This document shows positions 3,983 to 55,190 of a DNA stretch of 64,000 bases, in pieces. The DNA is from Kudoa neothunni (Eukaryota; Animalia; Cnidaria), in assembly GCA_964304625.1 (NCBI GenBank), contig OZ199840.1:9803315-9867314 (forward strand), read 5' to 3'. A model generated the notes under the pieces. The model saw only the letters and a program-made list of their open reading frames with translations, was not told the DNA's origin and ran no database searches. Positions within the stretch are counted from its first letter, which is position 1, and the number at the start of each line of letters is the position of its first letter. A program made the translations under genes and the position numbers.

Positions 3983-6899
3983 TTATTTCTTTTTTGTAGG
4001 CCATAAAACCTCCTATTCCTCCGATAAGGTATAATTGCAACAACAACCGACACTATAATTGCTAAACGAAAAAAAATTAAAAAAACAACAACTCACATCA
4101 CATACATTGTTTTTATTGCCTGACTCTATAAAATAATAATTACATACAAAAAATAATTATAAATAAATTTACGTTGATTTACTACCAGATGCACCTAAAA
4201 TTAGAGTTATACAATATTTCTAAATATTTAAGAATTGGATTACCTTTATCAATTTCAGCTGTACCAAATACTGTGTTATCCCTGCTGTAGTATACGGTCA
4301 AATGATAGTCGTTTAGATCCTCAACATTTTTCAATCGTAAAAGTCTTACAGCTTGGAAGGGTCGTACAATCACCTCCTCCGTTACTCATACATTTTTTAA
4401 CGGTTGGTCTAGCCACGTCGTTTGAATTAATTAACACCCATTTACATTTTGACTCTCCATCTATTCCAACTGGAAGTATGGTCGTTATCTGTAATGTTTT
4501 ATCGTCACGTACTATACTAACAAACATTTTTTTTTGTTAGATCAGTTGGGTCTTCAATTATTGGTTCTAAATTTTTACGTTTTAATAATCGTTAATGATA
4601 TATAATTTTTAATATATATTGTAAAATAATAACTCGGGGTTAGAATGAAATGAGTTTTCTTCAGAACGATCAACAGCTGTAACCAAAATTTTATATTCTT
4701 TCGAAGCGTCGTAACCTTCACTGAATATAATATTGTTACAATATGGTACTTCGGAGCATGATTTGGTATTTTTTTGATGTAGTTTCTGACGACTGTTCTA
4801 CCGTACCAGCTCTAGCAATGGAAATTTTTTTCAACATTAATTAATGATCCAGCCAATGGTGGTTGAATTGGTTTTTGCAGGACATGAATATATTGTATCC
4901 CACGATTCTCCATTTTTAACAGTGATTTTAATAAATGGGCATTTTGCGTCATTAAAACGGTGTGGGACAATTTTCCTATCACTTTAAATCCTCTGTCCAA
5001 TGCTTCCTTCGTAAAAGTAAGAGTCGAATAAGCTTTCGTATTTATAAAAATAATAGATCATTTAATTATAGTACTCGTTCTAATATTTGTGAATATAGTA
5101 GAACCATATTCTTCATATGCAACCACTTTAATATCGTAGGTAGTATTGAGTTCGAGGTCAATTAATTTCTTGGACTCCCTACATAAACCTCTACAAGGAT
5201 TACTATCTACACATGTTGCTTCGAAAAATTTGTTCATTCCTGCTATACTGACAAAGTAATCACATGTGGGTTCAGTTGCTTCGGTTCCGGGATCACCGAC
5301 AATTGCTTTAACTATGCTAGTTGAATCACCCGCAATAGGTTTTGCAGTATTAAAATTTGTGTCAGTTTTTTTATCTGAAATTATTAATTAATTCGAATAT
5401 TATGATAACTTTAATACTTGTTTGGACGAAAATATATTCCTTAAAATCTACATATTTTTTTTATAGTATTAGTAGTAGTAGTAGTAGTAATTGCAACTAC
5501 TATCATTATTGGTCGTCCTTCAGGTAATCCTTGAATAGTGCGAGTAGTATTACAATCATATTTACACCCATCCTTATTTAAACATGGGGCTATAAATTCA
5601 TTATTTTTGGTAGTATCTGCAACATAATATTTGATTTCACACCGTTCAAATGTCTTTGTTTCGCCAGATGGCGCCAATAATGGCACATTTTAACTTTACT
5701 CCGGTATTTGTCACTGATACTAGAGCATTATCATTTCCAGTTGGTTCGATGATGGCTAAAATATAATTAGATAGTTTATCTAATTATTTATACCAAATTT
5801 TTTGTATGTAAATCCTTCGAACGATCCATCCTGTTTTTTCCGATAAACTATGGTGTCTTCTTCGTATCAATATTTCTACAATTGGCTTTGTTGGAGTAAG
5901 AGTGAGTTCTACGTCGTTACAGGGGGCGTAGCATTGTTTGTCGTTATTGCCGCATTTTGATGAATAAACAGGTTTAGGATTTGCTACATCCGATGCATCT
6001 CTGATACTAAAGTGGCATATTTCATTAGGAATTGGGATTCGTAAATTTTAAGTTGTAATTTAGTATTCGCATTGGCAGATTTGTAGCTAACGTAGAATTG
6101 TGGCTTGTAAACGTCTATATTTTCTTTCATATAATAATTTGGCATGTGGTAATAGAAAATAGGATAATCGGAGCATCTCACTTCAAAATACGGGATTTTT
6201 ATTCCATATTCAACAGTATTAATATTGATAGTGTCATTAGCTTTACCACAGTCTGCTGCTTTAGGCACATCTTTGTATTTTATTCCTTTGTAATAAATGG
6301 GACAAGCGACAGGTTTGCATGTGATGGCTTCCAATTTTAAAATATTTCCGGATTTGTGGATGGTTTTATGTTTGGATCCACCAACAAAGCTAAATACTCC
6401 TTAATGTTGATAAATAATGTTTAACATACGAATTGCAAGCCCCAAAAACTTTTCCTCCCTTTGGGGAGACTCGACACTTTAACATTTCCAGCAGATGAAT
6501 CATCTTTTATATAAATGTATTTTGATCTTGGGGATAGTTTACTGTATTCCAGCTTATTGTTGGCACCAGCACAAGTCCTCACGCACATATTTGTAATGCT
6601 AGCCTCATTGCCTTCGCATGTAATGATTTCGCTAAAAATCATTTCCTGTAGCGTTTTTCTTGCATCATGCGACATTTTTTTCGTTGTCGAATATTGTGTT
6701 CCTCTCAGTTCAATATGAACTTTTACTAGTGTTACTTTCGGAATTATCTATTTGATAGAAAACTTCTCTTTCAGCAGAAATGGAACTGGTATCATCGGAA
6801 TAACTAGTATATATAACTAAATGAAATTTACTCAAATCGAACGATGAATTGTATACGCGATAAAATTATGACCAATATTAAGGAGCCTATTTTCATCAT
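3983..6899 (-). pseudogene. Cys-rich FN3-like type I membrane protein, copy 1 (frameshifted: pseudogene or unpolished consensus)
   Basis: Exon/intron layout colinear with copy 2; ATG at 6899/6896, signal peptide MMKIGSLILVIILS. Many single-base insertions in homopolymer runs break the frame. Confidence 0.8.
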
Positions 6900-9800
6900 A
6901 ATTGCAAATTGGCCTGAAAATATTAATCTGTTATTCTGTATATATTCACAGATATATATTCAATTATTAAGCTTCTTACTTAAATATAAATTAAAAAATG
7001 AATGCATTCGGATATTATTAACTATTTATCTATAGTATATATTGTCGGAAAAAATAATAATCAATGTAAAGATTGTCAGTAAAGTATTATAATAGCAGTT
7101 CCTAACGAAAATTATGAAACTAATTGGATTAAATATGGCATTGGGATTTATTATTAATGTTATATTTATTTAAGATAAAGGTTAAAATATTCTATTATTA
7201 TTTCTTGAGAAGTTTATTTTTATAATGTATAATTATTATATATTCAATTAAATATTACTTATATTATTGTTTTTCCCAATTTATCTTTTATAACGAAATA
7301 GAAAAGCTTTATATTAAAAAATAAAGCATCTTATCAAATTAGTAAAAAACATCAATTTCTTGAGGAAATTCTGGTTTTATGTATGCTTCTAATCGTTTGT
7401 GATTATCATAAAAACTGTCGTAAATTTTTTATTATTGGAATGTATTTACATCTGCAAGAAATTTCTATTTGTCAAATATCGTTCAATATGTAAACGATAT
7501 CTTTATTATTTAAATAAACCTTTCAAATTATTTATGTTTAACTCATCTTTATGTTAATTAAGGAAATAATGCCTAGTCTTTATGTAAGTCGATCTGCAAG
7601 CTGAATTTTGTAACGTATAGAGAATAGTATTATCACTCATTAGTTTTGTTTTATACTATTGTTGATATTATTCGTTTACTTATAAATATTTTTCACATCT
7701 ATCATTAATAATGCTTCATATTTAAAGAAAATGAAGCAACCTTGTGGCATTTGTCTTAATTAATTATAACTGTTGTATAGAGAAGAATAATTTCTAATTG
7801 TAACATAAAAATTATCTACTACCCCCCCAAACACACAAAATATACTTCTTGAGTCTATTTAAATAATCGATTAAATTCAAACAAATGAGGAATTATAGCT
7901 TAAATGATATCTATGGATTTTTACAAGTTGATATAATATATTGATTTTCCGTAAGGAAAACTCTGTTCTAATCTTATTCTGGAAAAATTAGGTCATTTAC
8001 GACTATAACATCGGCTTTATCTAAAAAATACATATTAAATTTTTTTTCTTGAAATTAATCTCAAATTTAAATAACCACGAAATTATATTTTTTGTTTTAT
8101 GTTTAGAAACACTTAATAATTTAAAAAGAAACAGAATTTCTAAAAATTTGAAATACAGAAATTAAAAATTAAATATAATTAATTTATATTTAATGATTTT
8201 CAAATCGGCATCTATTAAAATATTTCCAGATTATACGTATGCAATACAAACATCTCAAACCCACAAGAACAATTCAAATGACTGTTTTCCACATAAACCT
8301 CACATTAATACTTTTTCGGAATGTTATGTTAGTCAGCTTTAGATTATCTTAGACAGAAATAGAATTATTCGAATATTTGAAGTATATTAATGTTGATTTA
8401 AAACAAATAAACTTTATAAATTCCCATTTTTTCTAAAAAAATTTAAAGTTTTTTAAAAAATTCTTTAATATTAATGAAATTATTTTTCACAACAAAATTT
8501 GGAACACCAATGAACGTTGTAACGAGAAGATTCAAAACTGAAATAAATTCTTAAAATTATAATTTAAAGGGATTCAATTAATTTTTGGGCATATATCTAA
8601 GATGTTAAATACATAATTTACTTTTTTAATTATCTATTGTAAATATACAAGTTATAGATTGTCAATTTCGTTCCTAATGTGACAATAGTATAGATGAGCA
8701 ATATCATCTAGTCAATAGACAGTTTGAATCAATTGACGTATTATAATTTAGTTTGTTTTTGTTAGTTGCGATTTCTTAGGTACCGGATAATCCGATCGTG
8801 CTCTGGCTATATCTCAGGTAAAGAATATCTCTAAATTATTTCATCTATTTTATTCATATTTACATATAAAATAATATTTAATTACCTCAGTTTTTGTAAA
8901 TTTTAGAAAAATTGGTAGAATAAATTAACAATAATTGAACCATCATTAATTAAACGATAATATATTTTAATTATCGTATATTTTTTAATATTCCGATAAA
9001 TAACCAAATTATAAATTATGAAAATATAGATAATTAAAAAAATATCCTTTTTTTTGCTCATATTTCGTATTTTAACAAGAAATATAATATATGAAGACTC
9101 AAACTAGCGAAGAAGGTATCGTAAAATATAACAGTTATCATATGCAGAAAATAAATTTCATATATGATTCCAGTTTTTAGAGTTTATTTATATAATAAAC
9201 TCTTTTTATGCCTTAATGTTTGTCAAATAACTTTCTCATTGCTTTCCAATTGACTTTAATTTCTTCAATAGAATTGTGAGGTTTAATATATTCAACAAAA
9301 ATAATATGTTAATTCTAACTTTACATATATGTTATTCTATGATATTTTTAGATTTATCACTAATATTCAATTTTTTCCTATGAGATTCTAAATCATTTTA
9401 TGTGTCAATGTTTGTCATTTTTATTGGTGAAATGAATATTAAATCAACAGAAGACTTGTAATTATCATTATCATTATTTGATGCATTCATGGTTTTAAGA
9501 AATGAAGAAAAGCAAATAGAAATCAACGTATATGTGAGGCATTACAACGGAATACAACTATACTACAGTCATCGCATAAGGGGATATAGAATCTGAAAGT
9601 GAATTCTCACTTGAATTCTTTTACAAGCCTTTTCGGTTGAATCATACCTATAGCAATGTGGTGGATTAAATTTTTAACGTGCGATCTGATAAACGCTTAC
9701 CAAAGAAATTTTGTCACGCGCAAAGTCCTGAAAAATGCAGACGAAAAAATTCAAAATACTTCCATAAGCGTATTCAAAGATATAGCAACACAATACAAAG

Positions 9801-10569: not shown

Positions 10570-13500
10570 TACTGTAATACCTCCTTATAAACTGTATTTT
10601 TGGTCAGACCATTTGGAGAAAAAGAGTATAAATTGTGTTTGCAACTTACCCTGGAGAAGACGACATACAACTGCCAATGAGAAAAACACGGTTCCTCTTA
10701 ATATAAACCAGCAACTTTGAAGATTTGTCACTGGGCCTTATTTATGGATATTACAAGATATGATTTGATGGGAAATTGCAGTCTTTTAAAATTAAAGGCG
10801 GTGTCTGAACGAATAATCGGAATATATACATCTTCCCCTCTGGCACAGCCTGTTACGATAACGGCCTAAATAAGATAAGACATTAACGTCTTTACCACTA
10901 ATCGGGTGCTGTTATACAACCTTGGTGAATCCAAATTTCTTAGCAATATAATTGGAGTGTCTACCTTTAGGAGAAGTTTGTGTGAAGGAACCCTCGATAG
11001 CTCTAAAGTCGAGACTCTAGACCGTTGAGGAATTCAACGGGAAATTAATACATTGATTTTTGTCCACAATGGTGTCATATGATTTATACTCTGTAGAGTC
11101 GCCTGGAATAAGATGGATCAATCTATCATTGATTTTGTTTACGGATTGGTTTGTGGGGGTTAAGATAGCTCGTTCTGACAGTCAATTAGAGTTGTAAAAT
11201 TTTTGTTGTATTTCTGGAAAAACACGGTTTATCTAATCATCCATGGACGAAATCAAGTTTGCCAGGGAACATAGAGGTATGCATCCATTGTGCCCAATCG
11301 TAAGTTGATCATTACCTATCCGTGGTATTTCTGAAGCGAATTGATTGGTTCCTTCTTTCTTTGCTGAGTTGCGCTCTCATATTGGTGATGGGATGGTGGG
11401 TTTTAACTCTCGCCCATAAGGAAGAGAACTTTAGGGAATATTTTACTTCGTCATATCTTGTATCTCTGGGTATTACATGTAAAGTTTGGCGAAAATTGCC
11501 GGACAAAACCATTTTGATTCCGCCATATGGAATGTTTTTGTCTGTTTTATCCCTTATCGTTCTATCTAAAGCTTTGAAAACCACTCTGTTTGTCATTGTG
11601 CATTCATCCCATATGATGGCCGTACATCTAGCCAACAATTTAGACAAACCTGTCCCCTGCTGATTGCACATACGACGGTTTCATCATCCTTAATCGCGAT
11701 TGGCAACTTAAATGTACTATGGGCGACCCTACCTCCTGGAAACAATTTGGCTGCAATGTCCTAAGATGCAATAGCGAGTACAATTTTAGATCCCTTCTTA
11801 ATTCGACCAATAAAATAGTTGTCACAAATGTCTTATCTATACCACTAGGTGCATCAAGAAAAAAAACGTTACAATTACCTATATTGTTATAAATACGTAT
11901 CAACACTGTTTCGAATGCAAATCTTTGGTCAGGCGTCAGTTTCGGCTTGTTTATTTCTATAAAATCAGATAATTCTTCAGTGTCGTAGGCTAACTCTCTT
12001 TGGACTTCGTTTGAAAGAGGGACGCCAAATGTTCCATCCAAAGGAAGAAATCTGTGTGAATTTAACATTCCTCCGCTCATTTGAATTAAAGTTCTTTTTG
12101 TGTCAATTAGGGCATGTTAAAAATCTCAGAATTGAAAACCTAGTTTGACATTAAACTGTTTTGTTGCAGTTGATATCAGTAATCTTCCGACATATCTTCT
12201 TTAAAAAGTAACCAATGTTTGTGAGGCTGGCGCGTTTCGCAACTTTTGATCAACAGTGCGAATAATATTCGTAATTGACGTGGACTGTTTATAAGAGCCG
12301 CTTCTCTTAATGTACATTCCCAGTGGTCGTCTCCCTCCATCTAACCATTTTTAATGCACGCTTAAAGTTATGTTGGGTATAGCTGACCGTTAACCTTCTT
12401 AAGATCGTCAAAACTTTTAGGTCCCTTTACACAATGGAGCAACATCCTCAAATAAAAACATTCTTGATGTGCAGGGTGTACACTGTAAACTCTTCTTATT
12501 GTAGAGTCAAATCGTATGACTGGATGGCCTTTAACTGGACATCCTCTTTTTCTCCGACGCCAACTATTATCATTCCATACGTAATAAGATGGGACTTGAT
12601 GGTAGAGGAGACTTTGAGCGAATTCGTCATTCTGGCATAACTTGAAAAAAGCGGTTAATGGCGTATCCCTTTGATTTAGTAACCGATTCAACAAAGTTTC
12701 GTCGATGAAATGAATACGCCGACCGTTCTCCAAATGGACGCTTAAATGCTCTATGGTTGGAAGATGATTATGAATATTGAAGCCTAATAACCTCCAAAAT
12801 CCTTCGTTACTGCTTATGTAAAGACCAGCCATATAATTTGAAACTTTAACCAAACGATCTCTTTGATTAACAACAAACATGGCGGCAACAGAACCTTTGT
12901 TTACACACTTGCACATATATTTAGTGGACTTGACTGAATGGCAATACATTACATAAATATAGGAATTGAAAATCTTCGTCAACAAAGGACAATAGAGAAC
13001 AATCCAACTATTATCTATGATGACTTCCCCACCGTTGTTCAGATGGATTGACACCTGAAAACCCCCATCTTCAGCTTCAGGTCGTCTTATTTTGTAAACA
13101 GAATATCTATCAGTGTCTGTCTGGGAGAGTTTTTGGTGTATTTTCTCTGATCAATCATGCACGGGCTTTCTGGATTCGACGCACCACAGGGACTATGTAC
13201 CATAGTTGTTTTTACAATCTGGAAAAATACTGGATGTACACCTGGGTCTAGTAATTCGCTCAATATGAATTGGTCGATATCATTGGAACACAGTTTCTGT
13301 TTCATCCAGACCAATATATGAGCGTGTGGCAACCCCATTTCTGCCACTCAATAGTATACATAACACTAAAATTCACCAAAAATCTTCAATACATAAATTC
13401 AATTCATCAAAATTTTAATTACAAGTTGAATACTCTGGCAAATATATCTGGTCTGTCTTTAGGTGCTTGGCCATGAAATAACTCTTCATTAATTTCGCTC

Positions 13501-14890
13501 CAAAATGGATTTCATGTGAATGTTAGAAATAGATCTGACCCTCCAAAACATCGAACGTAGATCGTGGCATTCTGCATCTTCACGGTCATATAGCGTGATG
13601 AAACTACAAAAGTCGATGGCAAAATATACAACCGTCCCCGCCCATTTATTTCACCGTCGCTACGATTGCAATTCATTAAATTGATATAAGATTCAACATG
13701 AAATTCAAATTGTTTGGTTCTGATGAACCAAAGTCTCTGATTCCATCGTCGCAAGCATATCTACAGCATATTGTTGGAATAATGTCCAAAACTGATGAAG
13801 CATGTTAAAACTATTTTCCCTTACCATAAAATGAAAAGAATAAAAATCCTTACATGAAACACTTTTGTTTGTGCCAATCTATGGAATATGAAAATAGTAA
13901 CCATCTTGACCATAAACATTAATTAGTGGATATCGCAATACATCATACGATCTGTGTGTTTCGCTTATTCTTTGAAGTCTGTTGTCCTTACTGCTCGAAA
14001 CAATTTCCCTCCTAGATTGCTGCTCATCCGATATTACGATAGCCATCTCATTGTAAGTTGGGGTGTTGTATCTTCTCTCATGTTCTCCCTGTGGACGCTC
14101 ATCAGCGTTTATAATTATATTAAAATTAGAGGATGGGTACATTTCTAAAACATACTTAAAACTGTGGATGTAGTTATTGTGACTGTGTAACATATCTTGA
14201 AGCGCTAAAATAATATCATACCTAAGCTGGGGGTACATGTTGGATCGACTTTGAGCTTACAAATCCATGTCTTGTATGAAATATATTTGCAAGAATTTCG
14301 GTTGCTTATTTTCAGAAGGCGATATCGATCCAATTCGATGACAAACTTGACTGTGAACCTTAAAAATAAGCATGAATCCGTCCCTACTATTTACGTTCAC
14401 TCCAAATGATGTTATCTGGAAAGCACAGTTGTATCTTTAGATATTTTGTAGGAAGTGTCTGTAGAATATGAGGAGGAACAGGTAGTGCGTCCAAAATAAC
14501 CTTACCGCCGGCACAACACATATCCGCGAATTCGTTTATTCACTTCTTAGAACGGCATTTTGGGAAAATTTTCGACATTTTCCAAATTGTGATATTCTTT
14601 TCATTTCCATAGTTGTAGCAGAGGTCGTAATGTAAAGCGACCATATTCCAAGTATCATCAGACATACTTCGCGATTGTTGACCGAATAGAACAGGAGTGT
14701 AGGAAAATTCAGGTACAAATTTACTGCCTGATCATGTGCTGTGCTTATTTATAGGTGACACTGCAGGACTCTGTTGAGTCGCCTCACCTACACGTCGATT
14801 TCTATTGCTTACACTATTTGTTTCTCGTATTCGTTCTCTTTGCTCGTCGGTTTCTCGTGAAAGGCGTAAACGTCGGCAATTCCGTCGTAA
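10570..14890 (-). mobile_element. Decayed autonomous Helitron (Rep + Pif1 helicase)
   Basis: Rep motifs GLPHAHIL (HUH) and KYMCKCVNKG, SETHRSYDVLRYPL, ECFYLRMLLHCVKGPKSFDDLK; helicase motifs FFLDAPSGIDKTF, IIWDECTM, LSGNFRQTLHVIPR. Many stops and frameshifts; termini not resolved. Confidence 0.92.
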
Positions 14891-15527: not shown

Positions 15528-16212
15528 TCTATATAAATGAAGTAGTAACGTCCGTGTGTGTACGTATTTTTCATTCTTTATAGAGAGACATATCGCTCCA
15601 TTTGAGCAAAAATATGGAAAGGTAAATTTTCTTTTAACACATAAAAATACTTAAAAAATTATAAAAGGTTTGCATCCTACAAAATGACTAAAAACATTTT
15701 CACGTGGTATGATTGGTTTGATTTAAGGGTTTATGCAAACATATCGGTCATTTCATTAAGATTATAAAAAGTTAATTTAAAATGTACCATAGCGTTTATT
15801 TCATAATTTTAAAAAGTAACTTAGTAATTGAATCAGTTCAAATAAGGAAGGTAATATTAGGTTATGTAACTAAACTTTAATATGAAATTTATTTGTTGGT
15901 GTTTAACAACATTAATCCTTTTCAAATGATATGATTTAGAGATTACTGTGAACAGCAAGGAGAAAACCGATTTTTAAGGAGCTCTAAAGAGGAAATTTTA
16001 AACACTCATTAGTGTTTATTCATTGTAAAAATATTAAATAAGGTTCATGCGTCCAATTAGTTAAATAAATCATCCGTTAATTTGGTAATCTTTGTACTAT
16101 TTATCTAAATACTCTTAATTTATTTTGAACATTAAACGATCTTGGCTAACTCATTGCGTTAGTTTACTTGGCTGGGAAAGGAAGCCCACGCGAAGGGGGT
16201 CTTTTACGCTAT
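15528..16212 (+). mobile_element. Non-autonomous Helitron-like element
   Basis: 5' TCTATATAAATGAAG..GTCCGTGTGTG next to a TA-rich tract; 3' GC-rich imperfect hairpin gcccacgcgaagggggt followed by CTAT (degenerate CTRR). Confidence 0.4.
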
Positions 16213-16366
16213 TTTAACACATATATATAATTATTTTTTTATAAAAATAGAATCTATTCATTTTCTAAAAATTTTAAATATTTGATAACACTACATCACA
16301 ATTAATATTGAAATAAAATTAACAAGTATTAAGAAGATAATTAAATTGAACTAAAAGCGATGTTAA

Positions 16367-17724
16367 CCCTCCTTGTCTGAAGCGGGTCCCATTGCGGACC
16401 CCAATTTCATTATTTTTCACGTTACTCTGAAATGAACTGCTGATTTCTTAACTGTTCCAGTAGAGCCGCTTTATGATTAGAAAGTTTGCATACAAATTAT
16501 AATTTATTTTCTAATTTAAAAACACGCCTCAGGCATTATATTTATTCATAATCCGATTATTTATTCCTACAGAATCTCAAGAAAAATGGTCCATTGTATA
16601 CATATTAACTTATTTCACTTATTTATATTTATAAATTTATTTAATTGATTTTAAAGCCATATAGACGTAAGGTTTCTATATACTTCGACTTAATAAGGGA
16701 TTAGAGAGGATTAATCTGTACCGCACTTCTTGGTTGGTAGGCTCTTTTTTATCTAAAGAATCTCTCTTTACCAACAATAAACTAATCCATGATTCATTAT
16801 ATGAAATATAACTATTAGAACCTTTGTGTATAGATTGAGGATTCCGTAATATTTTTTCGGTGAAATATAAATTGATAAGTATAAAGTATTTGGAAAATAA
16901 TTGTTCTATTGCAAATTTATTAAAATAATCAATAGGACCTTTCAATAATTTTTAAAAATAGTCAGAAATAATGGCTATTACTGTTTATATTGAGTATATA
17001 ATTGAAGTTAAAGCATTGTGTGTTTATTAATTATTGATGTTGACATGTATGTGCTACGAATTATTCGTATACAAGCGTTAAACCTATGTTCCAGAAGTTT
17101 GCAAATATGGATAACAAAATATTTCAACAACTTAGATTCTTTCAAAATAAATTCTAAAATGTAATCTTACTGACTCTTAAATATGCAAATAAATTTTAGG
17201 AAAGTTCGTAAAAATGTAAATAAATTACTAAGCAATACACATTTCATAATTTTGTTATTATACTTTTGATAGAATTAAAACGATATGAAATTTTCAAACA
17301 CTGCTTTTCATGAAAACTCAGAGTAAAGTGCATGCACGACTACATTTTCTACTTCCTAAACAGTCTGATAATTTTTACAGAACGGCTCATAGTTGGGCCT
17401 ATGTTTGATCATCATCTATTAATTTTTATGGAACCTAATCGGATAAATTAGATATTTATTTCATTTAGACATCTTCGAAGCATTTAGTGCTTAAATTTAT
17501 GCGCTGATTTCACTACATTTGCCCGACTCAATAAATTCATCTTAGCTCATATCTGCATTTCAAGCTACTGGATAGAGTTAGATTTTTTTTATACTTATAA
17601 ATGCCTTTGAATAACATCATGTTAGTTTCGTAATAATTGATGGCGCTTAAGACCGACTTAAAAGGGGGTCCCCAATGGACCCGTAGGCACACGCGTAAAT
17701 TTTTCGCACGCAATGCAGGTAGGG
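16367..17724. mobile_element. Non-autonomous piggyBac-like element immediately downstream of copy 2
   Basis: TTAA|CCCT ... AGGG|TTAC termini, with subterminal GGGTCC..GGACCC palindromes at both ends. Confidence 0.6.
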
Positions 17725-17887: not shown

Positions 17888-20750
17888 TTATTTCTTTTTG
17901 TAGGCCATAAAACCTCCTATTCCTCCGATAAGTATAATTGCAACAACAACCGACACTATAATACTAAACGAAAAAATTAAAAAAACGACTACTCACATCA
18001 CATACATTGTTATATTGCCTGACCTATAAAATAATAATTACATACAAAAATAATTATAAATAAATTTACGTTGATTTACTACCAGATGCACCTAAAATTA
18101 GAGTTATACAATATTTCTAAGTATTTAAGAATTGGATCACCTTTATCAATTTCAGCTGTACCAAATACTGTGTTATCCCTGCTGTAGTATACGGTCAAAT
18201 GATAGTCGTTTAGATCCTCAACATTTTCAATCGTAAAATTCTTACAGGTTGGAAGCGTCGTACACTCACCTCCCCCATTACTCATACATTTTTTAACGGT
18301 TGGTCTAGCCACGTCGCTTGAATTAATTAACACCCACATACATTTGGACTCTTCATCTATTCCAACTGGAAGTGTGGTCGTTATCTGTAATGTTTTATCG
18401 TCACGTACTATACTAACAAACATTTTTTTTGTTAGATCAGTAGGGTCTTCAATTATTGGTTCTAAATTTTATGTTTTAGTAATCGTTAATGATATATAAT
18501 TTTTAATATATATTGTAAAATAATAACTCGGGGCTAGAATGATGGGAGTTTCTTCAGAACGATCAACAGCTGTAACCAAAATTTTATATTCTTTCGAAGC
18601 GTCGTAACCTTCACTGAATATAATGTTGTTACAATATGGTACTTCGGAGCATGATTTGGTATTGTTTGATGTAGTTTCTGACGACTGTTCTACTGTACCA
18701 GCTCTTGCAATGGAAACTTTTTCGACATTAATTAATGATCCAGCCAATGGTGGTTGAATTGGTTCTGCAGGACATGAATATATTGTATCCCACGATTCTC
18801 CATTTTTAACAGTGATTTTATAATGGCATTTTATGTCACTAATCGGTGTAGACAATTTTCCTATCACTTTATATCCTTTGTCCAATGTTTCCTTCGTAAG
18901 AGTAAGAGTCGAATAAGCTTTCGTATTTATAAAAATAATAGTTCATTCAATTATAGTACTCGTTTTAATACTTGTGAATGTAATAGAACCATATTCTTCA
19001 TAAGCAACAACTTTAATATCGTAGGCAGTGTTGAGTTCGAGGTCAATTAATGTCTTGGACTCTCTACATAAACCTCTACAAGGATTACTATCTGAACAAG
19101 TTGCTTCGACAAATTTGTTCATTCCTGCTATACTGACAAAGTAATCACATGTGGGTTCAGTTGCTTCGGTTCCGGGATCACCGACAATTGCTTTAACTAC
19201 GCTAGTTGAATCACCCGCAGTAGGTTTTGCAGTATCAAAACTTTTGTCCGTTTTTTTATCTTAAATTATTAATGAATTCAAATATTATGATAATATTGTT
19301 ACTTGTTTGGACGAAAATATATTCCTTAAAATCTGCATAGTTTTTTATAGTAGCAGTATTAGGTGCAACTACTATCATTATTGGTCGTCCTTCAGGTAAT
19401 CCTTGAATAGTGCGAGCAGCATTACAATTATTTACACAATCACCCGGATTTGAACATGTTGGAGCTATAAATTCATTAATTTTGATAGCATCTGCAACAT
19501 AATATTTGATTGCACACTGATCAAATGTCTTTGTTTCGACATTTGACTTGAATAATTTCACATTTAAAATGACTCCAGTATCTGTGACTGATACTAGAGC
19601 ATTTTTATTTCCAGCTGGTTCAATGATGGCTAAAATATAATTAGATACTTTATCTAATTATTTATACCAAATTTTTTGTATGTAAATCCTTCGAACGATC
19701 CGTCCTGTTTTTTCGGTAAGCTATGGTGTCTTCTTTGTACCAATATTTCTACAATTGGTTTTGTTGAAGTAAGAGTGAGTTCTACGTCGTTACAGGGGGC
19801 GTAACATGGTTTGCCAGTCCCTCCGCAATTTGATGAATAAATAGATTTAGAATTTGCTGCATCCGATGGATCTCTGATGCTAAAGTGGCATATTTCATTA
19901 GGAATTGGATTAGTGAATTTTAGTTGATATTTGGTTTTATCCTGAGCAGATTTGTATTTAACATAGAATTGTGGCTTGTAAACGTCTATATTTTCTTTCA
20001 TATAATAATTTGGCATGTGGTAATAGAAAATAGGATAATCGGTGCATCTAACTTCAAAATACGGGATTTTTATTCCATATTCAACAGTATTAATATTAAT
20101 AGTGTCATTAGCTTTACCACAGTCTGCTGCTTTAGGCACATCTTTGTATTTTATTCCTTTGTAATAAATGGGACAAGCGACAGGTTTGCATGTGATGGCT
20201 TCCAACTTTAAATATTTCCGATTTGTGGATGGTTTTATGTTCGGATCAATTAATAATGCTAAATATTTATTAATTATTTAACTAAGCTTTAAACTTACGA
20301 ATTCTAAATCCAAAAACTTTTCCTCCCTTTGGGAGACACGATCCTTCAACATCACCACCGGACGAACCATCTTTAATATAAATGTATTTGGATCTTGGGG
20401 ATAGTTGTGTATATGTAAGCTTATTGTCGGCGCCAGCGCAATTTTGTACGCATTTATTCTGAACTTCACTAACTTTACTTGGACATGTTTCAATTTCGAC
20501 AAAGTTATTTCCTTCAGCATTTTCTTTCATTATGCGACACTTATTTTCGCCTAAGTATTGTGTTCCTTTCAGTTCGATATGGACTTTATGGGCGTTGATA
20601 TCGGAATTATCTAGCTGATAATAAACTTCTCTTTCAACAGTAGCGTCATCGGAGTAACAAGTAATTAAAACTAAATGAAATTCACCAGAATCAAACAGAT
20701 ATTTGTATACGTGAAAATATGATGACCAACGAAAAAGGTTCCATTTTCAT
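17888..20750 (-). CDS. Cys-rich FN3-like type I membrane protein, copy 2 (10 exons, 818 aa)
   Basis: Exons 20711-20750, 20299-20670, 19668-20258, 19303-19629, 18960-19259, 18528-18917, 18141-18461, 18070-18091, 18006-18023 and 17888-17963 sum to 2457 nt in one open frame. All introns are GT-AG (38-66 nt). N-terminus MKMEPFSLVIIFSLLITCYS; C-terminus IIVSVVVAIILIGGIGGFMAYKKK*. Confidence 0.9.
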
Positions 20751-39990: not shown

Positions 39991-41125
39991 AATAAAGCTA
40001 AGGGATGTTCAACATTATACAAAAATTATTTTCAGTGAATAAAATTCAGCGCAAATGTATTTATAACTAATTTTTCGTATAATAATTTATAACGAAAAAT
40101 TTGAAAAAATTTCCTTAGGTCTGGTCTAGTCTAATTTAAAGATTCAAAATATTTTTGCATATAAATAATTAATATATATTTACTGTAATACTCGAAAAGT
40201 TTAATTATAATAAGTTTCAGTTTAATATTAACTTATTAATAGGGGTGAATTTGAATAATGATAAAAAATAATTTTTAAATTAAAAAAATATCGAAAATAT
40301 GTGAGCAATTATAATTATTTTGCCTCATTAAAAATTATAAATGTATACGGCTATGCCCAATGAGGAATTAATAATATTTTTAAAGTAGTTTTTTCTGCTG
40401 TATCTTTGGTTCCTTTATTTCTTTATTTGGCCGAAGAAGATTCGAAACAAGAAAATTAGTACATAGTGATGATTTTTGTATATCAGACTATTTCATTATC
40501 CACATATTTTTATTAAAAATAATGATATACCCGTAATGTTAATGCTACATTTGAACGTGGTAATAAGTTTTGCGACAATAATAATACGAATAAATGCGTT
40601 TACCTTAAGATTTTTTAGTTTATATTATGACCTAATGAATCATATTATGATCTTAAAAATATCATGCCGCTCGCGAGCTACGAGTTGTCTGTTTCTATCC
40701 GAAATAAACTGTGCAAATACTTAATATAACTTAATTATAAAAATTAACTGATTAAATTAGTATTATATTATTATTATCTCTATATAAGAAATTACAAATA
40801 AAAATTTATGTTAAATAAATAATAAATCTAACGACTTTTAATACATATACCTAAATTAAATTTTTATATCAAGTGAAATACATAAACTAAGACTGTCGGT
40901 CACTAATAAATTAATATTAAAATAGAAAAGATTAAACAATATTAATAAAACGAGTATATACTGGCGATATTAATTTTAAAGAAAAAAATATATCAAAATT
41001 AAAATAATATTATAGTGAGATAATAAATACTATTCTAAATATAAATTTATGCTCTAAATCCTAAATAATATCATTAGTAGTGATAATTGAGTCTGCAGTG
41101 TCTGATCAGGATGATTTGATAGGGG

Positions 41126-44107
41126 TTATTTCAACTTCCAAAAAGCGAAAATGTATACCAACCTAAATATGTGTAATTAGAAAGTATTAGTCATTACTTA
41201 TCTAATGATTTACAGCGCTATTATTGCGACCCCAAAAACTGAGAATATAGTAATTATCAAGTATCCTAAGCAGAGCAATTTAGATAATTGTTATTATTCG
41301 ACGATTACTTTTAGCAGTTAATCCCATGAGTCTTTCCGTAATAAAAACATTTCTAAAAAATATCATTATATTTTTAGAAAAATTATCAAATTTTATTTAT
41401 ACAATATTAAATTAATTTTTATATAATACAATAAATGAAATTACGAGTTAATAAATATAGAAGGAACGAATTTTTCATTTTTGATGACCATAAAATCTTC
41501 TGGGCTAATAAAAATTATAGAAAAAAACTAATTATTGTCACTACATAACAAAATATGCACAACGTCCTTCTTTGTTGCAATACTGTTATATTGTTTAGTA
41601 AAGTTTTCGCAAATTAAAAGATTACTTGATTTTTCCCACACACAACGTTGTTGCAAGAAGTAAAATTTTTGTATTCGGGCTCGCATACTCCCATTACACA
41701 AAACTAAATATAGCCGAATTCACATTGATTAAATTAACATCATTACTATTCCTTTAGGACATTTTATATTTCTACAATTATTTCTATTTAAGTCCGCATC
41801 AGTGCATTTGTTATTGAGACACATCTAATAGATAAAAATTTTATTTAGAATAAATCGACAAAAAATGTTACTTTATTTTCACCACACTTATGGCCGTTTG
41901 GAATTAATCCAAAAATAGATGCAGAAACATTTTTTACATCAACTCTATAATTGGATTAAATTTTTATTAATTTTTTTATTATTACACGCACGATTCATCC
42001 TCTTTCGTAGTTCTGTAACCAAATCCGCTCCATTTAGTTTCATTGTTCGCTAAGCAGGAAAGGACGCCACAATATGATCGTCTAATAAAGTTAATTAATA
42101 TTAAATAAGAATCTTATTCTACTCAGTTCTTTCATTATATGGAGTTAGATCGTAACTGCCTCTCCTGTCCGTTAGTTCGTTACACTTTGTTTCGTGAGTA
42201 ATTTTCACTATGAGTCCGGTTAATGTTCCAAAAAAAACATCGTAACAAATGCACATACTAGAATTATGTTGGATTTTACATTGTTGGTTCGCATTTGGAC
42301 ATATTCCATTAGCACAATATGCCTGAAAATAATATATAAAAAAACTCTGAATTATAGTTGTCTACTAACATTGTTAGAGCGACAAGGTGTTCCATCTGGC
42401 TTGGCAACTGTCATCGGGCACTAAATAAATTTTCTTTTATATTACGTATCGCATATACATATATGCACATATGGACTATTTCCCAAACATTGTATTTCAA
42501 AATTGCATTCATCAGCTCTACGACACACATGATTTCTTTTAAACTAGATAATAATTATCACAGTTTATCGACAACAAAATCCATCATAACATAAATATGG
42601 TTACTTTGCAGGAAGAACAACACTCACCTGCGGAGCACTCTGCTCCAGGTTTAAGTTTGCATGTTGTCATGTCGCAGCATTTGAATTCACCATTGTTGAC
42701 ACAATTAGCCTCAAACCCACAGTCGCACTCCTCGCCTGGGTCTATCATGCCGTTTCCACACACTTGTAATACAGGATGGTTGACGTTGTTCTAGGAAATA
42801 TTTGATGGAATTATTTATTAAATTACCAATCCATAACATATATTTAATCACAAGTAGAAAGTCATTTTCATGATATTTCTCAAGGTGTTTATTTATCATT
42901 TCGAAGCTCTTTTCACTAAATGCTGTTGGATATGGCAAGTTTATTGGCCTAAAACCTCAATAAATGACACAACTCATTTCATTAATATATACCATGGGCC
43001 ATACACAGAACGCATAATACATCCGTATAGTTCATCGAGACATTTGCTCTCTAAAAATATTATTATTTATGTTTATTACATCCATATTTCTTCACTAATT
43101 TTAAAGCTTTAACTTACCTAATTTTTCAACATGTGAGCAACCCATTAGGTGGCCTAATTCATGAGAGAATGTTCTATGATCCATTTGCCGGTCATATTGT
43201 TCACCTCGTAATATCTGTTTGCAGGGTGAGTCCATTATACAACAATTGACATTAAACCTTAACAAGGGATACACCGAATGCTGGAAGTGTATTGGGATAA
43301 TATCTTGATAAGCCAACATTTGTCGTGCTTTCCCAATAATCTCGATAACTAGGTTCAAAATTTTCTACTGACTTACACCGAAACAAATTACACGAACATT
43401 AAATGATATCCACTATTGATTGAGGATTTTTCAATGAAATTTAGAAAGTCACGGGCCATCATTACCAAGTTACGGCCCTTTTCCTCGAAAGGGGTCCAAT
43501 CGAATGACTTTGCTATTATTTTTATGTTGTGCCATGCAAAAGACTATATTTTCGTTTAAAATAATTGATTATCATAAAAAGCGATAAATACCTGCATTGA
43601 TCTTACTACCGTGTCTCTCATATAGGTGGGTCTTTTATCATTAATTATAAGCTAGAGCATTTGATAAAAGAAAATAGACCATGTTGGTACCGTGCTCAAA
43701 CCTTTATATATGTTTATATGAACGTATCGAGGTTTATCCATTCTTTTAATGTATCTAATATTTGAAGGCAACTAAAATACGTAATAATTTATATGTTCAG
43801 CCAACTATTCACTTGATATTTGTTGGTAGCATCTACAGTAAAAATTAAGTTCAAATTCAGAATTTATTAGGGAAGTAAAAAATTAAGAAACCTTTTTTAG
43901 TTATTGAAATAAGAAAAATAAAATTTATAATGTTAGATAACATTATAATACAAACGTTTTCTTATTCGTTAAAGTCTTTCTCAGTAGTTAATCCGAAAAT
44001 CATGGGTTTACCTTAACTGTCCTACAATCAGATCAATATATTTTTGTGGTTTTACCGATAAAAAATATAGTGAAATGAAATTGATAATAATTCCAACATA
44101 AGCATTG
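41126..44107 (-). CDS. ADAM-family metalloprotease-disintegrin, multi-exon, membrane-anchored (5' end uncertain)
   Basis: Zinc motif [11 protein letters not shown] (43131-43163), CIM Met-turn, disintegrin [16 protein letters not shown]...[25 protein letters not shown], Cys-rich region [14 protein letters not shown], and [31 protein letters not shown] followed by WKLK*. The first exons could not be joined cleanly. Confidence 0.88.

Positions 44108-45498: not shown

Positions 45499-45502
<4 letters not shown>

Positions 45503-45537
<35 letters not shown>
45503..45537. repeat. (TA)n microsatellite
   Basis: Direct reading; a shorter one lies at ~22548-22570. Confidence 0.9.
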
Positions 45538-45542
<5 letters not shown>

Positions 45543-46506: not shown

Positions 46507-48581
46507 CCCTCCAACACCTTTGGGGTGAAAAACACCCCAGATTTTTTTCGGCTTAAATAATAGGAATAAATATATTTATTACGGATGTGTAATACTAATG
46601 ACATAAAACCTATAATTATTCCAAAATCTTGAGGTTTTTAAAGTAATTACATGAATTCACCCGCGACGTGGTTATCTAATATAATAAATGCGCTCTCCTT
46701 AAAATTTGATAGTGTTGAAATGAGCGGTCTTAGTGAGTATAATGACGATTTATGTTCATCCGGCAGCGAATTCGAGGATCAAATTTCAGAAGAATATAAA
46801 ATTAGTGATGATGAAGCTGAAGCTGAAATTCCGGAAGCACACAGCAACGTGTTAACAAGCAAACGCAGAATTACATGAAGCCTATCCAAACCACCTACAA
46901 CTAAAACATGCCAAGAAAACATTATGAATTCTTTACTCGGAGCTACAGCTTATACGACATCCAAAATACTATACCTGCTAGATTGTCTCTTGTTTTTCAA
47001 TAATGATATATGACATCAAATTATTTCATTCACCAACATGTTTGGAGTACACCGTTTTAAAGAAAACTGGATTAACTTAGATCTTGTGGAATTTAAAGGT
47101 TACCCTGGTCTTCTCCTATTAATGGCTACACATAAAGACCGACAAGAGCCTTTATGCGAGCTCTTCAGCGTAAAAGGAGGAAAGGAGATATACAGAAAGC
47201 TTTTTTCATTCTATCGATTCACTCAAATCGCTCGGGCACTCCATTATGGTGATTTTAATACACGACTGGAACGAAAAAAAGTTGACAAATTTTGCCCCTT
47301 CTGTGATGTATGAAGTCAATGGATTGATTTATTACCAAGATGTAACCGTAGACGAGAAACTAGTTTCGTTCAAGGGGAAGTGCTTATTTCGACAGTACAT
47401 GCCGATTAAATCGACAAAGTATGGCCTGAAGTTTTTTTTATTAGCCGATCCAGTGGCAAACCATGTCTGTAACATCAATATATATCTCGGGTGAAATAAC
47501 TACGAAACCATTCGACAATGCGGATTGGGTGGAAGTGTTGTTCTTTCACTGTCAACATCACTATTCGATTCAGGTAGGAATGTTGTAGCAGACAATTTTT
47601 TTTCGTCATCCTCCATTGCGAAAAATTTTTTCAGAAAAAGCTTACGTTCTTGGGAACAGTTCGGAAAACCAAAAAGAAGATACCTCCTTATTTTCTTCCC
47701 TCAAGAAAAATGACCTTCTACAGTAGTACTTTTGTGTATTACGGAAAATTCATGCTGACTGACGTCTTATGTTTGTAATAAGTCAGAAGCGGGAACTCTG
47801 TTGACGAGTGGTACTGTTGATGATTCTGTTAGCGACGAGTTAACTAAGTGCAAGCTCCAAGTGATTCTAAATTATAACTAAACGAAAGGGAGAATCGATA
47901 ACGTCGATAGGATGTTAGCGTCGGTTTCTGTACGCAGATTCACAAGAAGATGGCCTCTAATAATGTTTTTTAACATGGTGGATTTATCTCTAATCGACGC
48001 ATTTGCATTATTTAAGGTTATTCTTAATGATAGCACCACAAATAGGTGTAATTTTTTGAGGCAGATGGCAGAATAACTTTACATTCCCTTATTGACACAA
48101 AATTCGTCCGAAAATAATGTCATCCAGAAAACATCTAAGAAAATTCTCTCCCCGAAAAAGAATCCACCTATGAACTCCAAACAATACAGATGTGAGTACT
48201 GTAAGCGAAGTAAAGATAAAAAAAATAAATGGTGCCAGAGATGCTACAGATATTATTGTTTAGATCACTCCTCAATTAATTGTTTTGGTTGCAATAAATA
48301 AAAATATTTTTTGTTACATTTTCATTAATACGTGTATCAAGTTAATTATTTTTGCAAAAATCTATTTATAAACATTAAGTTGACTGATAATATCCAACGG
48401 TATTTTACGAACACTTGTCGATGTTATTACGAAAAGATCTAATGCTTGAAACTAACACATATTTTCCTCCGTTCTCTTCCGGTGATTTTTGTATTATTCC
48501 AAAATTATGATCATTCGATTTATCTAAGTATTGTCGTACAATAAAAATGTGGTTGTTTTACACCCCAAAAGTGTTCGAGGG
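46507..48581 (+). mobile_element. Full-length but decayed piggyBac transposon
   Basis: TIRs CCCTCCAACACCTTTGGGGTG / CCCTCGAACACTTTTGGGGTG. Transposase remnants VTVDEKLVSFKGKCLFRQYMPIKSTKYGLKF, GRNVVADNFFSS, TKGRIDNVD, RRWPLIMFFNMVD and a C-terminal Cys-rich finger. Confidence 0.93.
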
Positions 48582-51387: not shown

Positions 51388-52303
51388 TAGATAACAATCA
51401 AATTCTATGCATAGGTAACTAATAAAATATTTATATTCTTACCTCCAATAACAATAAGATTCGTGTACTTAAAGTTTATTCCTGCCATCAAATCACATTA
51501 TTTTAACTAATATAAATTATTTCGGATAAATAATAATTTAAGGTATTATTATATAATAAAACACACTTCATTATTTTTTTATCTCGCTTTAACTATTGAT
51601 TACTAAATATGTTATGTATTTAATACCAATTAAAATATCTTTAATATTAAATATATTTACTTTTACAATATGTTGACTTTGGAATTGAAAAACTATAATA
51701 ATTTTACTAATAATTATTGAAAACAATTATATTAATAATTTAAGAGACGAAGAAAATATTAAATAAAACTTTCTTAAGTCGATACTTATAAACTTGGTCT
51801 TATAATAAGTCTAGTTAACATAATAAATTACACAACAAAAACTGTAACCAATTCATTATTTTATTATATTAAATATAATAAGGTTAATCTTCAAATTTTC
51901 AAAATATTTCCATCTAGCTGCACAAATAAACCTTATGAATGTTTATTAAAAAGATTTAAACTGTTAATCATTAATAAAAGATGGCTAAGTACATATTTAT
52001 TGGCAATAAACTTGTAATTTTTTACTTATTTTTATAATATTTCATCACGATTAATATTATAATAACACTTGAAAGTATTAATTAGGCTAGTATAAAATAT
52101 TAAATGGAGTATTAATTAAAATGATTAACGATGAGCGATAAACTAAACTTTTAAGTAAACATAAATAGGAAGACTTGGAATTAGTTTTTATAGAAATATT
52201 GGATAAGATAAATAATTATAAAATATTCATTTATATTGGTAATGAACCATGATAAATAATATTATTCTTTATCTACTAATAAAATGAATATTTGTATCAT
52301 TTT

Positions 52304-55190
52304 TTATTTATTTCTGTAGGCCATAAAACCTCCTATTCCTCCGATAACTATAATTGCAACAACAACCGACACTATAATGCTAAACGAAAAAATTAAAAAA
52401 CAACTACTCACATCACATACATTGTTTTATTGCCTGACCTATAAAATAATAATCGCATAAAAAAATAATTATAAAATAAATTTACGTTGATTTGCTACCA
52501 GATGCACCTAAAATTAGAGTTATACAATATTTCTAAGTATTTAAGAATAGGATTACCTTTATCAATTTCAGCTGTACCAAATACTGACCTATCCCTGCTG
52601 TAGTATACGGTCAAATGATAGTCGTTTAGATCCTCAACATTTTCAATCGTAAAAGTCTTACAATTCGGAAGGGTCGTACAATCACCTCCTCCGTTACTCA
52701 CACATTTTTTAACGGTTGGTCTAGCCACGTCGTTTGAATTAATTAACACCCATTTACATTTTGACTCTCCATCTATTCCAACTGGAAGTGTGGTCGTTAT
52801 CTGTAATGTTTTATCGTCACGTACTATACTAACAAACAATTTTTTTGTTAGATCAGTTGGGTCTTCAACTATTGGCTCTAAATTATATTTTTTAGTAATC
52901 GTTAATGATGTATAATTTTTAATATATATTGTAAAATAATAACTTGGGGCTAGAATGATAGAAGTTTCTTCAGAACGATCAACAGCTGTAACCAAAATTT
53001 TATATTCTTTCGAAGCATCGTAACCTTCACTGAATATAATATTGTTACAATATGGTACTTCGGAGCATGATTTAGTATCGTTCGATGTAGTTTCTGACGA
53101 TTGTTCTACTGTACCAACTCTTGCAATGGAAACATTTTCGACATTAATTAATGATTCAGCCAATGGTGATTGAATTGGTTCTGCAGGACATGAATATATT
53201 GTATCCCACGATTCTCCATTTTTAACAGTGATTTTATAATGGCATTTCGCGTCACTAATCGGTGTAGACAATTTTCCTATCACTTTATATCCTTTGTCCA
53301 ATGTTCCCTTCGTAAGAGTAAGAGTCGAATAAGCTATCGTATTTATATAAATAATAGTTCATTCAATTATTGTACTCGTTTTAATATTGGTGAATGTGGT
53401 AGAACCATATTCTTCATATGCAACCACTTTAATATCGTAGGTAGTATTCGGTTCGAGATTAATCAAGGTCTTGGGCTCCTTACATAAACCTCTACAAGGA
53501 TTACTATCTGAACAAGTTGCCTCCACAAATTTATTTTTTTCTGCTATACTGACAAAGTAATCACATGTGGGTTCAGTTGTTTCGGTTCCGGGATCACCGA
53601 CAATTGCTTTAACTATGCTAGTTGAATCACCTGCAGAAGGTTTTTCAGTATTAAAATTTTTGTCAGTTTTTTTATCTTAAATTAAAGATGAATTCGAATA
53701 TTATGATAATATTGTTACTTGTTTGGACGAAAATATATTCCTTAAAATCCGAACTCTCATTTATATTACTTTTGGATATCACTAACGTGACCGCTCTTCC
53801 GTCCGGTAAACCTGTAACCGTGTAGGCAGCGGTACAAACGGTAGGGCAATCGGTACCGCTACCTGATGTGCAAGTTGGAGCTTTGGTATAAGTATTACTG
53901 GTAGTATCGGCATTGTAGTATTTAATTGCACATTGAGAAAATTTTTCGACATTACCATCTGGCGCGAATAATTTCAAATTTATTTTCACCCCTGCGTTCT
54001 CCACGGTTATTAGTGCATTTTCGTTTCCATTTGGCTCAATAATCGCTATAATAGTATTAAAAAAATATTATTTTTAATTTTTACCAAATTTTTTATATTT
54101 ATATCCCTCAAACGATCCGTCTTGTTTTTTCTGTATTCCATGATGTCTCCTCTGGACCAATATTTCAACAATTGATTTAGTTGGTTCTAGAGTGAGTTCT
54201 ACGTCGTTACAGGGAGCATAGCATAATTGATCAGTTTCGCCGCATTTTGAAGAATATTCTGCGTTATCTTGAGTTGTAGCACTCGACCCATCCCTGATAT
54301 TAAACAAGCATATTTCACTAGGAATTGGATTCGTAAATTTAAGTTGGTATTTAGTTTTTTCGGTTTCAGATTTATATCTAACGTAGAATTGTGGCTTGTA
54401 AATGTCTATATTTTCTTTCATATAATAGTTTGGCATGTGGTAATAGAAAATCGGGTAATCAGTGCATCTCACTTCAAAATATGGTATTTTTACGCCATAT
54501 TCCACTGCGTCAACATCACTTCCATTTGCAGAAGTCGAACAGTTTTCTCCTTGAGGCACTTCTTTATATTTTATTCCTTTATAATAAATTGGACAAGCCG
54601 CTGGTTTACAAGTTGTGGCTTTTAACCTCAGTAAATAATCGTTATGCGTAGATGCCCCTATGTTTGGATCCACCAATAGTGCTAAGAATTCATTAATAAT
54701 GAAAATTACACAGTTATCATACGTATTGCTAAACCAAACACTTTGGCTCCACTTTTAACACCACCGTTTTTTAGGCCGTCTGCGGATACTTCATCTTTTA
54801 TATAAATATATTTTGATCTGGGTGAAAGCTTGTCGTAATCATGCTTATTATCAACCCCAGCACAAGTTCGGATACACTTATTATTAACATCACTCTCCTT
54901 ACCTTCACATGTTTGGATTTCATCGTAGTTGGTACCCAATGAATTTTCTCGCATTATGTGGCATGTTTTACTGTTTTGATAATCCGTTCCTTTCAGCTCG
55001 ATATGAAATTTAAAATTGGCGACATCGGCCTCATGTATCTGATAATACACTTCTCTAGTTGGAGCAGCGGATGAAGCGTCAGCTGAATAACATTCATTTG
55101 AAACTGAACAACAATTAATAAAATCAAGTATATAATCAACTTACGTGAAAATATAATGAGAAAAGTGTGAAGAATTATATTCGGAGTCAT
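52304..55190 (-). CDS. Cys-rich FN3-like type I membrane protein, copy 5
   Basis: Same exon structure; N-terminus MTPNIILHTFLIIFS; the 268-aa ORF is identical to that of copy 4; C-terminus FMAYRNK*. Confidence 0.9.

Follow-up and report, generated by a model that had tools for sequence, protein, structure and literature searches.

The window analysed here is a stretch of 64,000 nucleotides from the myxozoan Kudoa neothunni (assembly GCA_964304625.1, contig OZ199840.1, positions 9,803,315 to 9,867,314) and is located on the third of the four pieces that make up the 40.26 Mb genome. It is AT-rich (about 30% GC) and carries five paralogous genes on its minus strand, at about 3.9-6.9, 17.9-20.8, 24.0-26.9, 35.8-38.7 and 52.3-55.2 kb, which are called copies 1 to 5. 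Six further copies (u1 to u6) are present within 55 kb upstream of the window, so that the family forms a tandem array of at least eleven genes. Exchange of sequence between these paralogues is strongly supported, because different segments of the gene give incongruent trees, triplets of copies behave as mosaics, the two halves of the gene show a roughly seven-fold contrast in silent-site and intron divergence, and internal tracts have been replaced while their flanks are unchanged. The process responsible is very probably recurrent non-allelic gene conversion among the tandem paralogues, homogenising the membrane-proximal half of the gene and patching its variable half.

According to the gene model obtained from the alignment, each copy has seven exons whose joins are all in phase 1, separated by introns of about 40-66 bases and followed by a short stretch and a transmembrane exon. 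Exon lengths are multiples of three, and the GT and AG ends of all six introns are kept in all eleven copies studied. Exons 2-4 are called here the head and exons 5-7, which are membrane-proximal, the stalk. Seven of the eleven copies are complete and open, each one with its own start codon and splice sites. Three of the other four are broken by single-base indels, and u2 is cut off by a scaffold gap.

All five window copies are read on the minus strand. Copy 1 occupies positions 3983-6902 from start codon to stop, with exons 1 to 7 at 6857-6902, 6430-6816, 5794-6389, 5418-5755, 5075-5374, 4634-5032 and 4244-4566 and the transmembrane exon at 3983-4052. Its frame contains about fifteen single-base insertions with respect to all other copies, mostly in A runs, and its counterpart u3 is open; these insertions look more like homopolymer consensus errors than decay. 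Copy 2 (17888-20756) is open from exon 1 to exon 7 (20711-20756, 20299-20670, 19668-20258, 19303-19629, 18960-19259, 18528-18917 and 18141-18461) and has its transmembrane exon at 17888-17955. Copy 3 (24000-26902), also open, is the divergent member, sharing 55-75% identity with the other copies, and is used as an internal control because it is not mosaic. The exons of copy 4 (35786-38673) are at 38628-38673, 38207-38587, 37569-38165, 37200-37530, 36857-37156, 36425-36814 and 36038-36358, and its transmembrane exon is at 35786-35852; exon 4 carries one extra base in a G run near 37482 that breaks the frame. Copy 5 (52304-55190) is open, with exons at 55145-55190, 54723-55103, 54085-54681, 53719-54045, 53376-53675, 52944-53333 and 52557-52877 and the transmembrane exon at 52304-52371. 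Copies 4 and 5 are carried by a duplicated block of 4.7 kb (34921-39623 and 51439-56130, respectively) that is 93% identical between its two versions, indicating that the array grew by block duplication.

Mosaic structure of the paralogues

Sliding comparisons of identity show that the nearest neighbour of a copy changes along the gene. For instance, u6 is 97-99% copy-4-like at its 5' end (650 bp) and then 95-100% copy-5-like over most of the remaining 3 kb. The far flanks of u6 are both copy-4-like, u6 and copy 4 being colinear on both sides across 14 kb; since both flanks stay copy-4-like, the copy-5-like tract is internal, which indicates conversion and not a single crossover. Copy 5 shares a run of 748 identical bases with u6 and one of 794 with copy 4. 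Copy 1 is also a mosaic, with a u3-like 5' half and a u1-like 3' half, and copy 2 has u4-like flanks on either side of a middle region (alignment columns 800-1700) that is 98-100% identical to u2.

Among the eight similar copies, the pairwise homoplasy index (PHI) gave z values of -16 to -22, and 63 of the 168 triplets were mosaic at p<=0.001. A single tree fitting all parts of the gene, the outcome that had been named as incompatible with patchwork sharing, was not obtained: in approximately unbiased (AU) tests each of six segments rejected most of the trees of the other segments, and five of the six rejected the whole-gene tree, with log-likelihood differences of up to 342.

Copy 3 and u5 show baseline divergence only and no switches, and their longest exact match to the other copies is of 33 bp or less. 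In contrast, the homogenised stalks share exact matches of 69-88 bp. The dependence of conversion frequency on the similarity of the partners is thus observed, the control being the single pair of copy 3 and u5. A GENECONV-like run test is confounded by regional conservation once copy 3 is included, and was used only for long identical runs.

A second array of the family, located on another chromosome (contig 1, 16.44-16.56 Mb), contains nine genes and no gaps. It shows the same features, that is, a diverged head, stalks that are 90-99% identical, switching neighbours and a PHI z of -53, so that the result does not depend on the doubtful 47-kb contig described below.

Loop cassettes within the window

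The original prediction, made from the window only, had listed six motif patterns that the five copies would share in changing combinations, and all six are literally present in the sequence. The significance of single items was assessed by a 3SEQ-like permutation test on the five window copies with Bonferroni correction. Copies 2 and 3 do contain KSAQDKTK, and copies 1 and 4 contain KSA(N/D)ANTK. In 19912-19957 all 12 informative sites are identical between copies 2 and 3 (p<=3e-4, 0.01 after Bonferroni correction). This interval of exon 3 of copy 2 (minus strand) is an AQDKTK-type loop cassette that, in the alignment of the eleven copies, is common to copy 3, u5, u2 and u4. A second cassette occupies the same loop in copies 1, 4, u1 and u3, and a third one in copy 5 and u6. 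KQDGSFEG occurs, as proposed, in copies 1, 2 and 5, although the frame of copy 1 is locally shifted there. At the end of exon 3 of copy 5 (54113-54150, minus strand), 13 of 15 sites are of the copy-2 type (p<=3e-4), and the cassette is of the type of the copy-1/2 group, unlike those of copy 4 and u6.

The claim that GLPEGRPIMIVVA is shared by copies 1, 2 and 4, while copies 3 and 5 have LVIS, and that the intron 4/exon 5 start of copy 4 resembles copy 2, is borne out by 27 of 30 copy-2-like sites of copy 4 in 37113-37285 (p<=3e-4). They belong to a copy-2/u4-type patch at 37113-37308 (minus strand) that runs from the end of exon 4 through intron 4 into the start of exon 5. In the quartet formed by copy 4, u6, copy 5 and copy 2, 34 consecutive sites from 37308 to 36852 unite copy 4 with copy 2 and u6 with copy 5, three of them located in intron 4 and one in intron 5. 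Two other items are present but do not stand by themselves. LDQT is found in copies 3 and 4, but the agreement does not go beyond chance (5 sites, p=0.004, Bonferroni 0.11), the upstream copies having LDPT or LDST, one base off. The pairing of copies 1 and 4 and of copies 2 and 5 in intron 5 consists of only two sites and is not significant alone.

For exons 2-7 of the five window copies the PHI gave z=-5.3 (p=2e-4). The window by itself gives a genuine but thin patchwork signal, and the strong evidence is provided by the six copies outside it. These copies also complete the designation of copy 5 as the sister of copy 4, since the positional counterpart of copy 4 is u6. The idea that short conversion tracts reassort variable loops stands as far as there are patches of about 40-200 bp on loops; however, the signal is dominated by long tracts, some of about 3 kb, and by the homogenised 3' membrane-proximal half.

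Silent sites, selection and exchange

Between copies 2 and 5, synonymous divergence (dS) is 1.14 and intron distance 0.44 in the head, versus 0.15 and 0.066 in the stalk, that is, about seven times lower. Copy 3 differs from the others by a dS of about 1.0-1.7 and an intron distance of 0.30-0.37 in both halves. The homogenised block extends through the 3' untranslated region (UTR), with an abrupt end beyond it. In the head, where no overall positive selection was detected by this measure, omega is about 0.2-0.3; it rises above 1 for exon 4 in two pairs with small counts. Since synonymous sites and introns drop too, and omega is 0.2-0.3, the likeness of the stalks is due to shared recent ancestry and not to constraint.

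Two other processes were considered. GC-biased conversion gave no signal, the GC content of third codon positions (GC3) being equal in head and stalk, and mutation of the RIP (repeat-induced point mutation) type was ruled out by the substitution spectrum.

The upstream contig as a control

Upstream of the window there is a 47-kb contig bounded on each side by a run of 200 N (window coordinates -47457 to -47258 and -199 to 0). This contig (-47257 to -200) is colinear with window positions 1-44634 and pairs u3 with copy 1, u4 with copy 2, u5 with copy 3 and u6 with copy 4. Both ends of the two blocks are identical except for very few mismatches and short indels, and the intergenic difference between them, about 1%, provides the baseline. 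Copy 3 and u5 differ by 0.85% (33 differences in 3363 aligned bases), and their comparison consists of one painted segment in which mismatches are unclustered (p=0.9). Copies 1, 2 and 4 differ from their counterparts by 4.7-7.3% overall; the most divergent 250-bp windows reach 8-15% (identities as low as 85%), and in these deviant windows the sequence matches another paralogue. The transition/transversion ratio in copies 1, 2 and 4 is about 1.0-1.2, compared with a baseline value of 2.3, which would be expected if old differences between paralogues had been pasted in.

Elsewhere, the peaks of divergence between the blocks coincide with dispersed repeats present in 40 or more copies, and the transposon patches, like copies 1, 2 and 4, reach 5-15%. 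With respect to repeated elements in the window, a PIF1-like helicase frame (Helitron-type element) at 11312-14238 contains two 500-bp patches that differ by 6-8% between blocks, and the region 15600-17400 holds two dispersed repeat families (40 or more genomic copies, 78-85% identity) with a 7% difference between blocks.

The published assembly of K. neothunni was obtained from low-coverage HiFi reads (about 7x k-mer coverage) of infected yellowfin tuna, and residual haplotypic duplication was reported, the duplicates being purged (PMC12239612). Because the matching published assembly had such duplication, the 47-kb contig is somewhat likelier to be a second haplotype than a true duplicate. 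In the former case, the two homologues of one infection would differ by recent conversion tracts.

Support from sequencing runs

Four runs of one sample contain 20-49% of the words of copy 4, and their contigs are short; no RNA data set holding the sequence was found among the runs. Contigs of 165-242 bases that are exact to copy 4 were found over 37105-37346 (one contig) and over 37201-37365 (two contigs), where every other copy differs at 28 places or more. The joining of the copy-4-specific head to the copy-2-like patch is therefore supported by the reads. On the 3' side of the patch copy 4 is indistinguishable from copy 2, and the other letters seen are those of other paralogues. The extra base at 37482, in the G run of exon 4 of copy 4, is absent from one run contig, and the break of this exon may be a consensus error.

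Proposed mechanism and alternative explanations

Misaligned homologous recombination between members of the array has probably pasted stretches from copy to copy repeatedly, mostly as non-crossover gene conversion and probably with some unequal crossing-over. The tracts measure between about 40 bp and about 3 kb and take in introns and the 3' UTR. From exon 5 to the 3' UTR, where the copies are already alike, conversion would be frequent and keep the stalk 90-100% identical; in the diverged head (exons 2-4) it would be rarer and patchy, moving loop cassettes between copies that are otherwise distant. As partners, copy 3 and u5 would be too diverged. We infer the direction of transfer of each tract, and also that the events were germline, evolutionary ones and not programmed.

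Different observations weigh against this account. Among copies 1, 2, 4 and 5, 343 of 365 quartet-informative sites (94%) fit one tree, (1,2)(4,5). The borders of the segments used in the AU tests were picked after the data had been seen. The 47-kb contig may be a second haplotype and not a paralogous block, and transposon copies show peaks of divergence between the blocks too, which fits ectopic exchange but also consensus trouble in repeats. The homopolymer indels of copies 1 and 4 look like consensus errors, and u1 carries single-base insertions as well. Finally, the four runs probably come from the same sample as the assembly and are not independent, and they provide short contigs and not spanning long reads.

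One of the other explanations is programmed diversity, in which the genes would be a repertoire of variant surface antigens and segmental conversion would make mosaics during infection, by analogy with VSG, vlsE and msp2. The family is large, its proteins are predicted to be at the cell surface, and the cassettes are on variable loops. If the 47-kb contig is a second haplotype, tracts of kb scale differ between the homologues of one infection, and antigenic change by a mechanism that is not known has been reported in myxozoans (preprint 10.64898/2026.02.11.705288). However, there is neither an expression site nor an archive of silent fragments, most copies being complete genes; moreover, mean omega in the head is 0.2-0.3 and the strongest effect, homogenisation, removes diversity. 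On balance such a programme appears quite unlikely. It is also doubtful, as a broader proposal, that the family is a myxozoan variable surface repertoire in which the stalk and the introns would act as homology anchors and the head cassettes would be reshuffled fast enough to give kb-scale differences between homologues within one infection. If it were true, this would be a recombination-driven diversity system in an animal that parasitises animals.

An assembly artefact would imply that contigs are chimeric between paralogues or haplotypes and that the mosaics exist on no single DNA molecule. The two 200-N gaps that flank a 47-kb contig duplicating its neighbour are compatible with it, and so are the single-base insertions (about fifteen in copy 1 and one, absent from a run contig, in copy 4), the coincidence of divergence peaks with repeated sequence in general, and the matching published assembly, with about 7x k-mer coverage and purged duplicates (PMC12239612). 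However, the read-derived contigs match copy 4 exactly over the junction, with at least 28 differences from all other copies, and seven copies keep every exon open and all splice sites. As is generally known, HiFi reads are several times longer than the 3.3-kb gene with its flanks, and they need no short-read polishing. The gap-free second array, in addition, gives an even stronger signal, and an artefact is considered very unlikely.

Recurrent conversion could also be replaced by a few old chimeric duplications, generated by unequal crossing-over that joined a head to another stalk and followed by no continuing conversion. Head/stalk chimeras are what a single crossover in misaligned genes produces, and the array did grow by block duplication. 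However, in u6 and copy 4 the tracts are internal and positional flanks are kept on both sides, and each gene shows many separate switches. A minimum of 24 recombination events among eight copies was counted in the stalk alone; this count is not trusted in the diverged head, where recurrent mutation inflates it. The identical runs of 748 and 794 bp beside 10-15% divergence point to very recent events, and a purely ancient origin of the mosaics is highly improbable. That there was no exchange at all, but only duplication, purifying selection having preserved the likeness of the 3' half and chance or convergence having produced the shared loop motifs, has practically no chance of being correct: the fit of 343 of the 365 window quartet sites to one tree and the lack of significance of the LDQT and intron 5 items alone are outweighed by the roughly seven-fold drop of synonymous and intron divergence in the 3' half and its homogenised 3' UTR, by the rejection of a common tree in AU tests, by cassettes that are common at the DNA level with intron sites included, and by copy 3, which belongs to the same array and family and does not show the pattern.

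Comparison with known systems

Interlocus gene conversion and concerted evolution are known in mammalian MHC and KIR genes, in globins and in plant R-gene clusters. The array resembles such concerted families in its tandem paralogues, in tracts of tens of bases to a few kb that affect silent sites and introns, in the dependence on similarity and in trees that change along the gene. It differs in that the family is new, has no curated domain match and belongs to a myxozoan. The mechanism is thus of a known kind, acting on a new family and probably in a phylum new for it, and no paper reporting such an analysis for myxozoans was found in the literature searched. Gene conversion in tandem families is textbook knowledge, and the interest of the present case lies in where it occurs.

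In the VSG mosaics of Trypanosoma brucei, in Borrelia vlsE and in Anaplasma msp2, one expressed locus is fed by silent, often truncated donors, and the change takes place within an infection. The genes described here share with them short donor segments in variable regions framed by conserved sequence. However, they are complete genes, and an architecture with a single expression site was not found among them.

In the Theileria Tpr family (PMC10730637) and in the large apicomplexan contingency families reviewed in PMC4413850, a variable part is reported to be joined to a conserved, membrane-associated part. The likeness consists of large, fast-evolving, lineage-specific arrays with a variable region and a conserved membrane side. 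There is no sequence relationship, and the conserved part is, in the present family, a predicted extracellular stalk with a single transmembrane helix; recombination is documented here by tests on the sequences themselves.

According to a preprint (10.64898/2026.02.11.705288), the myxozoan Sphaerospora molnari has Giardia-type variant-specific surface proteins (VSPs). The predicted products share with them a signal peptide, an ectodomain with cysteines, a single transmembrane helix and a tail of very few residues, and are likewise encoded by many copies. However, cysteine amounts to about 4% and not to above 10%, CXXC repeats and the [KR]X[KR]XK[KR] tail are absent, and the genes have at least seven introns. 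Membership in the Giardia-type VSPs was rejected on the basis of cysteine content, CXXC and the basic tail.

Predicted product and extent of the family

The predicted protein has a signal peptide, an ectodomain rich in beta structure that carries conserved cysteines, a single hydrophobic helix and a tail of 3-4 residues that ends in RNK or KKK directly after the helix. The signal peptide and the helix were read by eye without a predictor, and protein searches were done exon by exon. Exon 3 encodes eight invariant cysteines in 198 residues (about 4%), without CXXC periodicity. From these features the family is predicted to encode type I membrane proteins with a putative location at the cell surface. 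As a recombining family of predicted surface proteins, it is a concrete candidate for antigen change in myxozoans.

Pfam searches with all exon products gave no curated family match, the only signal being a sub-threshold fn3 on exon 5 (20.7 bits versus a cut-off of 25). The AlphaFold model of exon 3 has low confidence (predicted local distance difference test, pLDDT, 62). Its best Foldseek rows are tandem FN3/cytokine-receptor ectodomains (E about 0.006-0.05, template modelling (TM) score about 0.3), and Atlas features point weakly towards Ig-like domains; given the low-confidence model, these fold matches may serve as a lead only.

The family is lineage-specific, new and very large. At least 150 open copies of exon 3 are present on three large pieces of the genome, and the 3' frame has more than 160 matches in it. 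The 3' open frame gave no match in a word search among 5.8 billion proteins, the length window of which would miss full-length relatives. An exhaustive search with exon 3 recovered only 15 short fragment relatives among 1.84 billion representative proteins, all from metagenome or run assemblies; the two that were traced are both on small contigs, one in a sequencing-run assembly and the other in a metagenome assembly. The annotation of the published assembly, for which proteins of relatives served as hints, comprises only about 5,300 genes (PMC12239612). The contrast between at least 150 open copies of exon 3 and only fifteen short fragment relatives suggests that the family may be largely missing from annotation. 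Some caution is advisable, as apparent extra paralogues and pseudogenes in low-coverage assemblies can stem from uncollapsed haplotypes and homopolymer errors.

A further member of the family is found on contig 1 (12777298-12777897). Its exon 3 is 75% identical to that of copy 5, closer than most of the array to which copy 5 belongs, and it could be a donor from outside the array.

Other features of the window and the genome

Contig 4 is an 18.2-kb mitochondrial genome with 43% GC. Its cox1 is divergent (242 bits) and has eight in-frame TGA codons, and standard tools recognised no tRNA genes or Rfam rRNAs in it. Markers of nematodes are absent from the genome, neither SL1 nor a cuticle-collagen domain having been found, and a nematode origin was rejected.

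Inside the array, on the minus strand of the window at 41100-44100, there is an ADAM-like gene; one of its exons matches Pfam Disintegrin above the cut-off and another shows a reprolysin-type zinc site (sub-threshold). A perfect tandem repeat of 16 bases (31.8 units) at 62630-63138 lies inside a minus-strand open frame of 214 residues without a family match. Positions 47038-47713 and 1925-2326 hold frame-shifted pieces of a piggyBac-type transposase (DDE_Tnp_1_7) and an ISXO2-like transposase domain, and a Tc3-type helix-turn-helix frame is located at 32348-32890.

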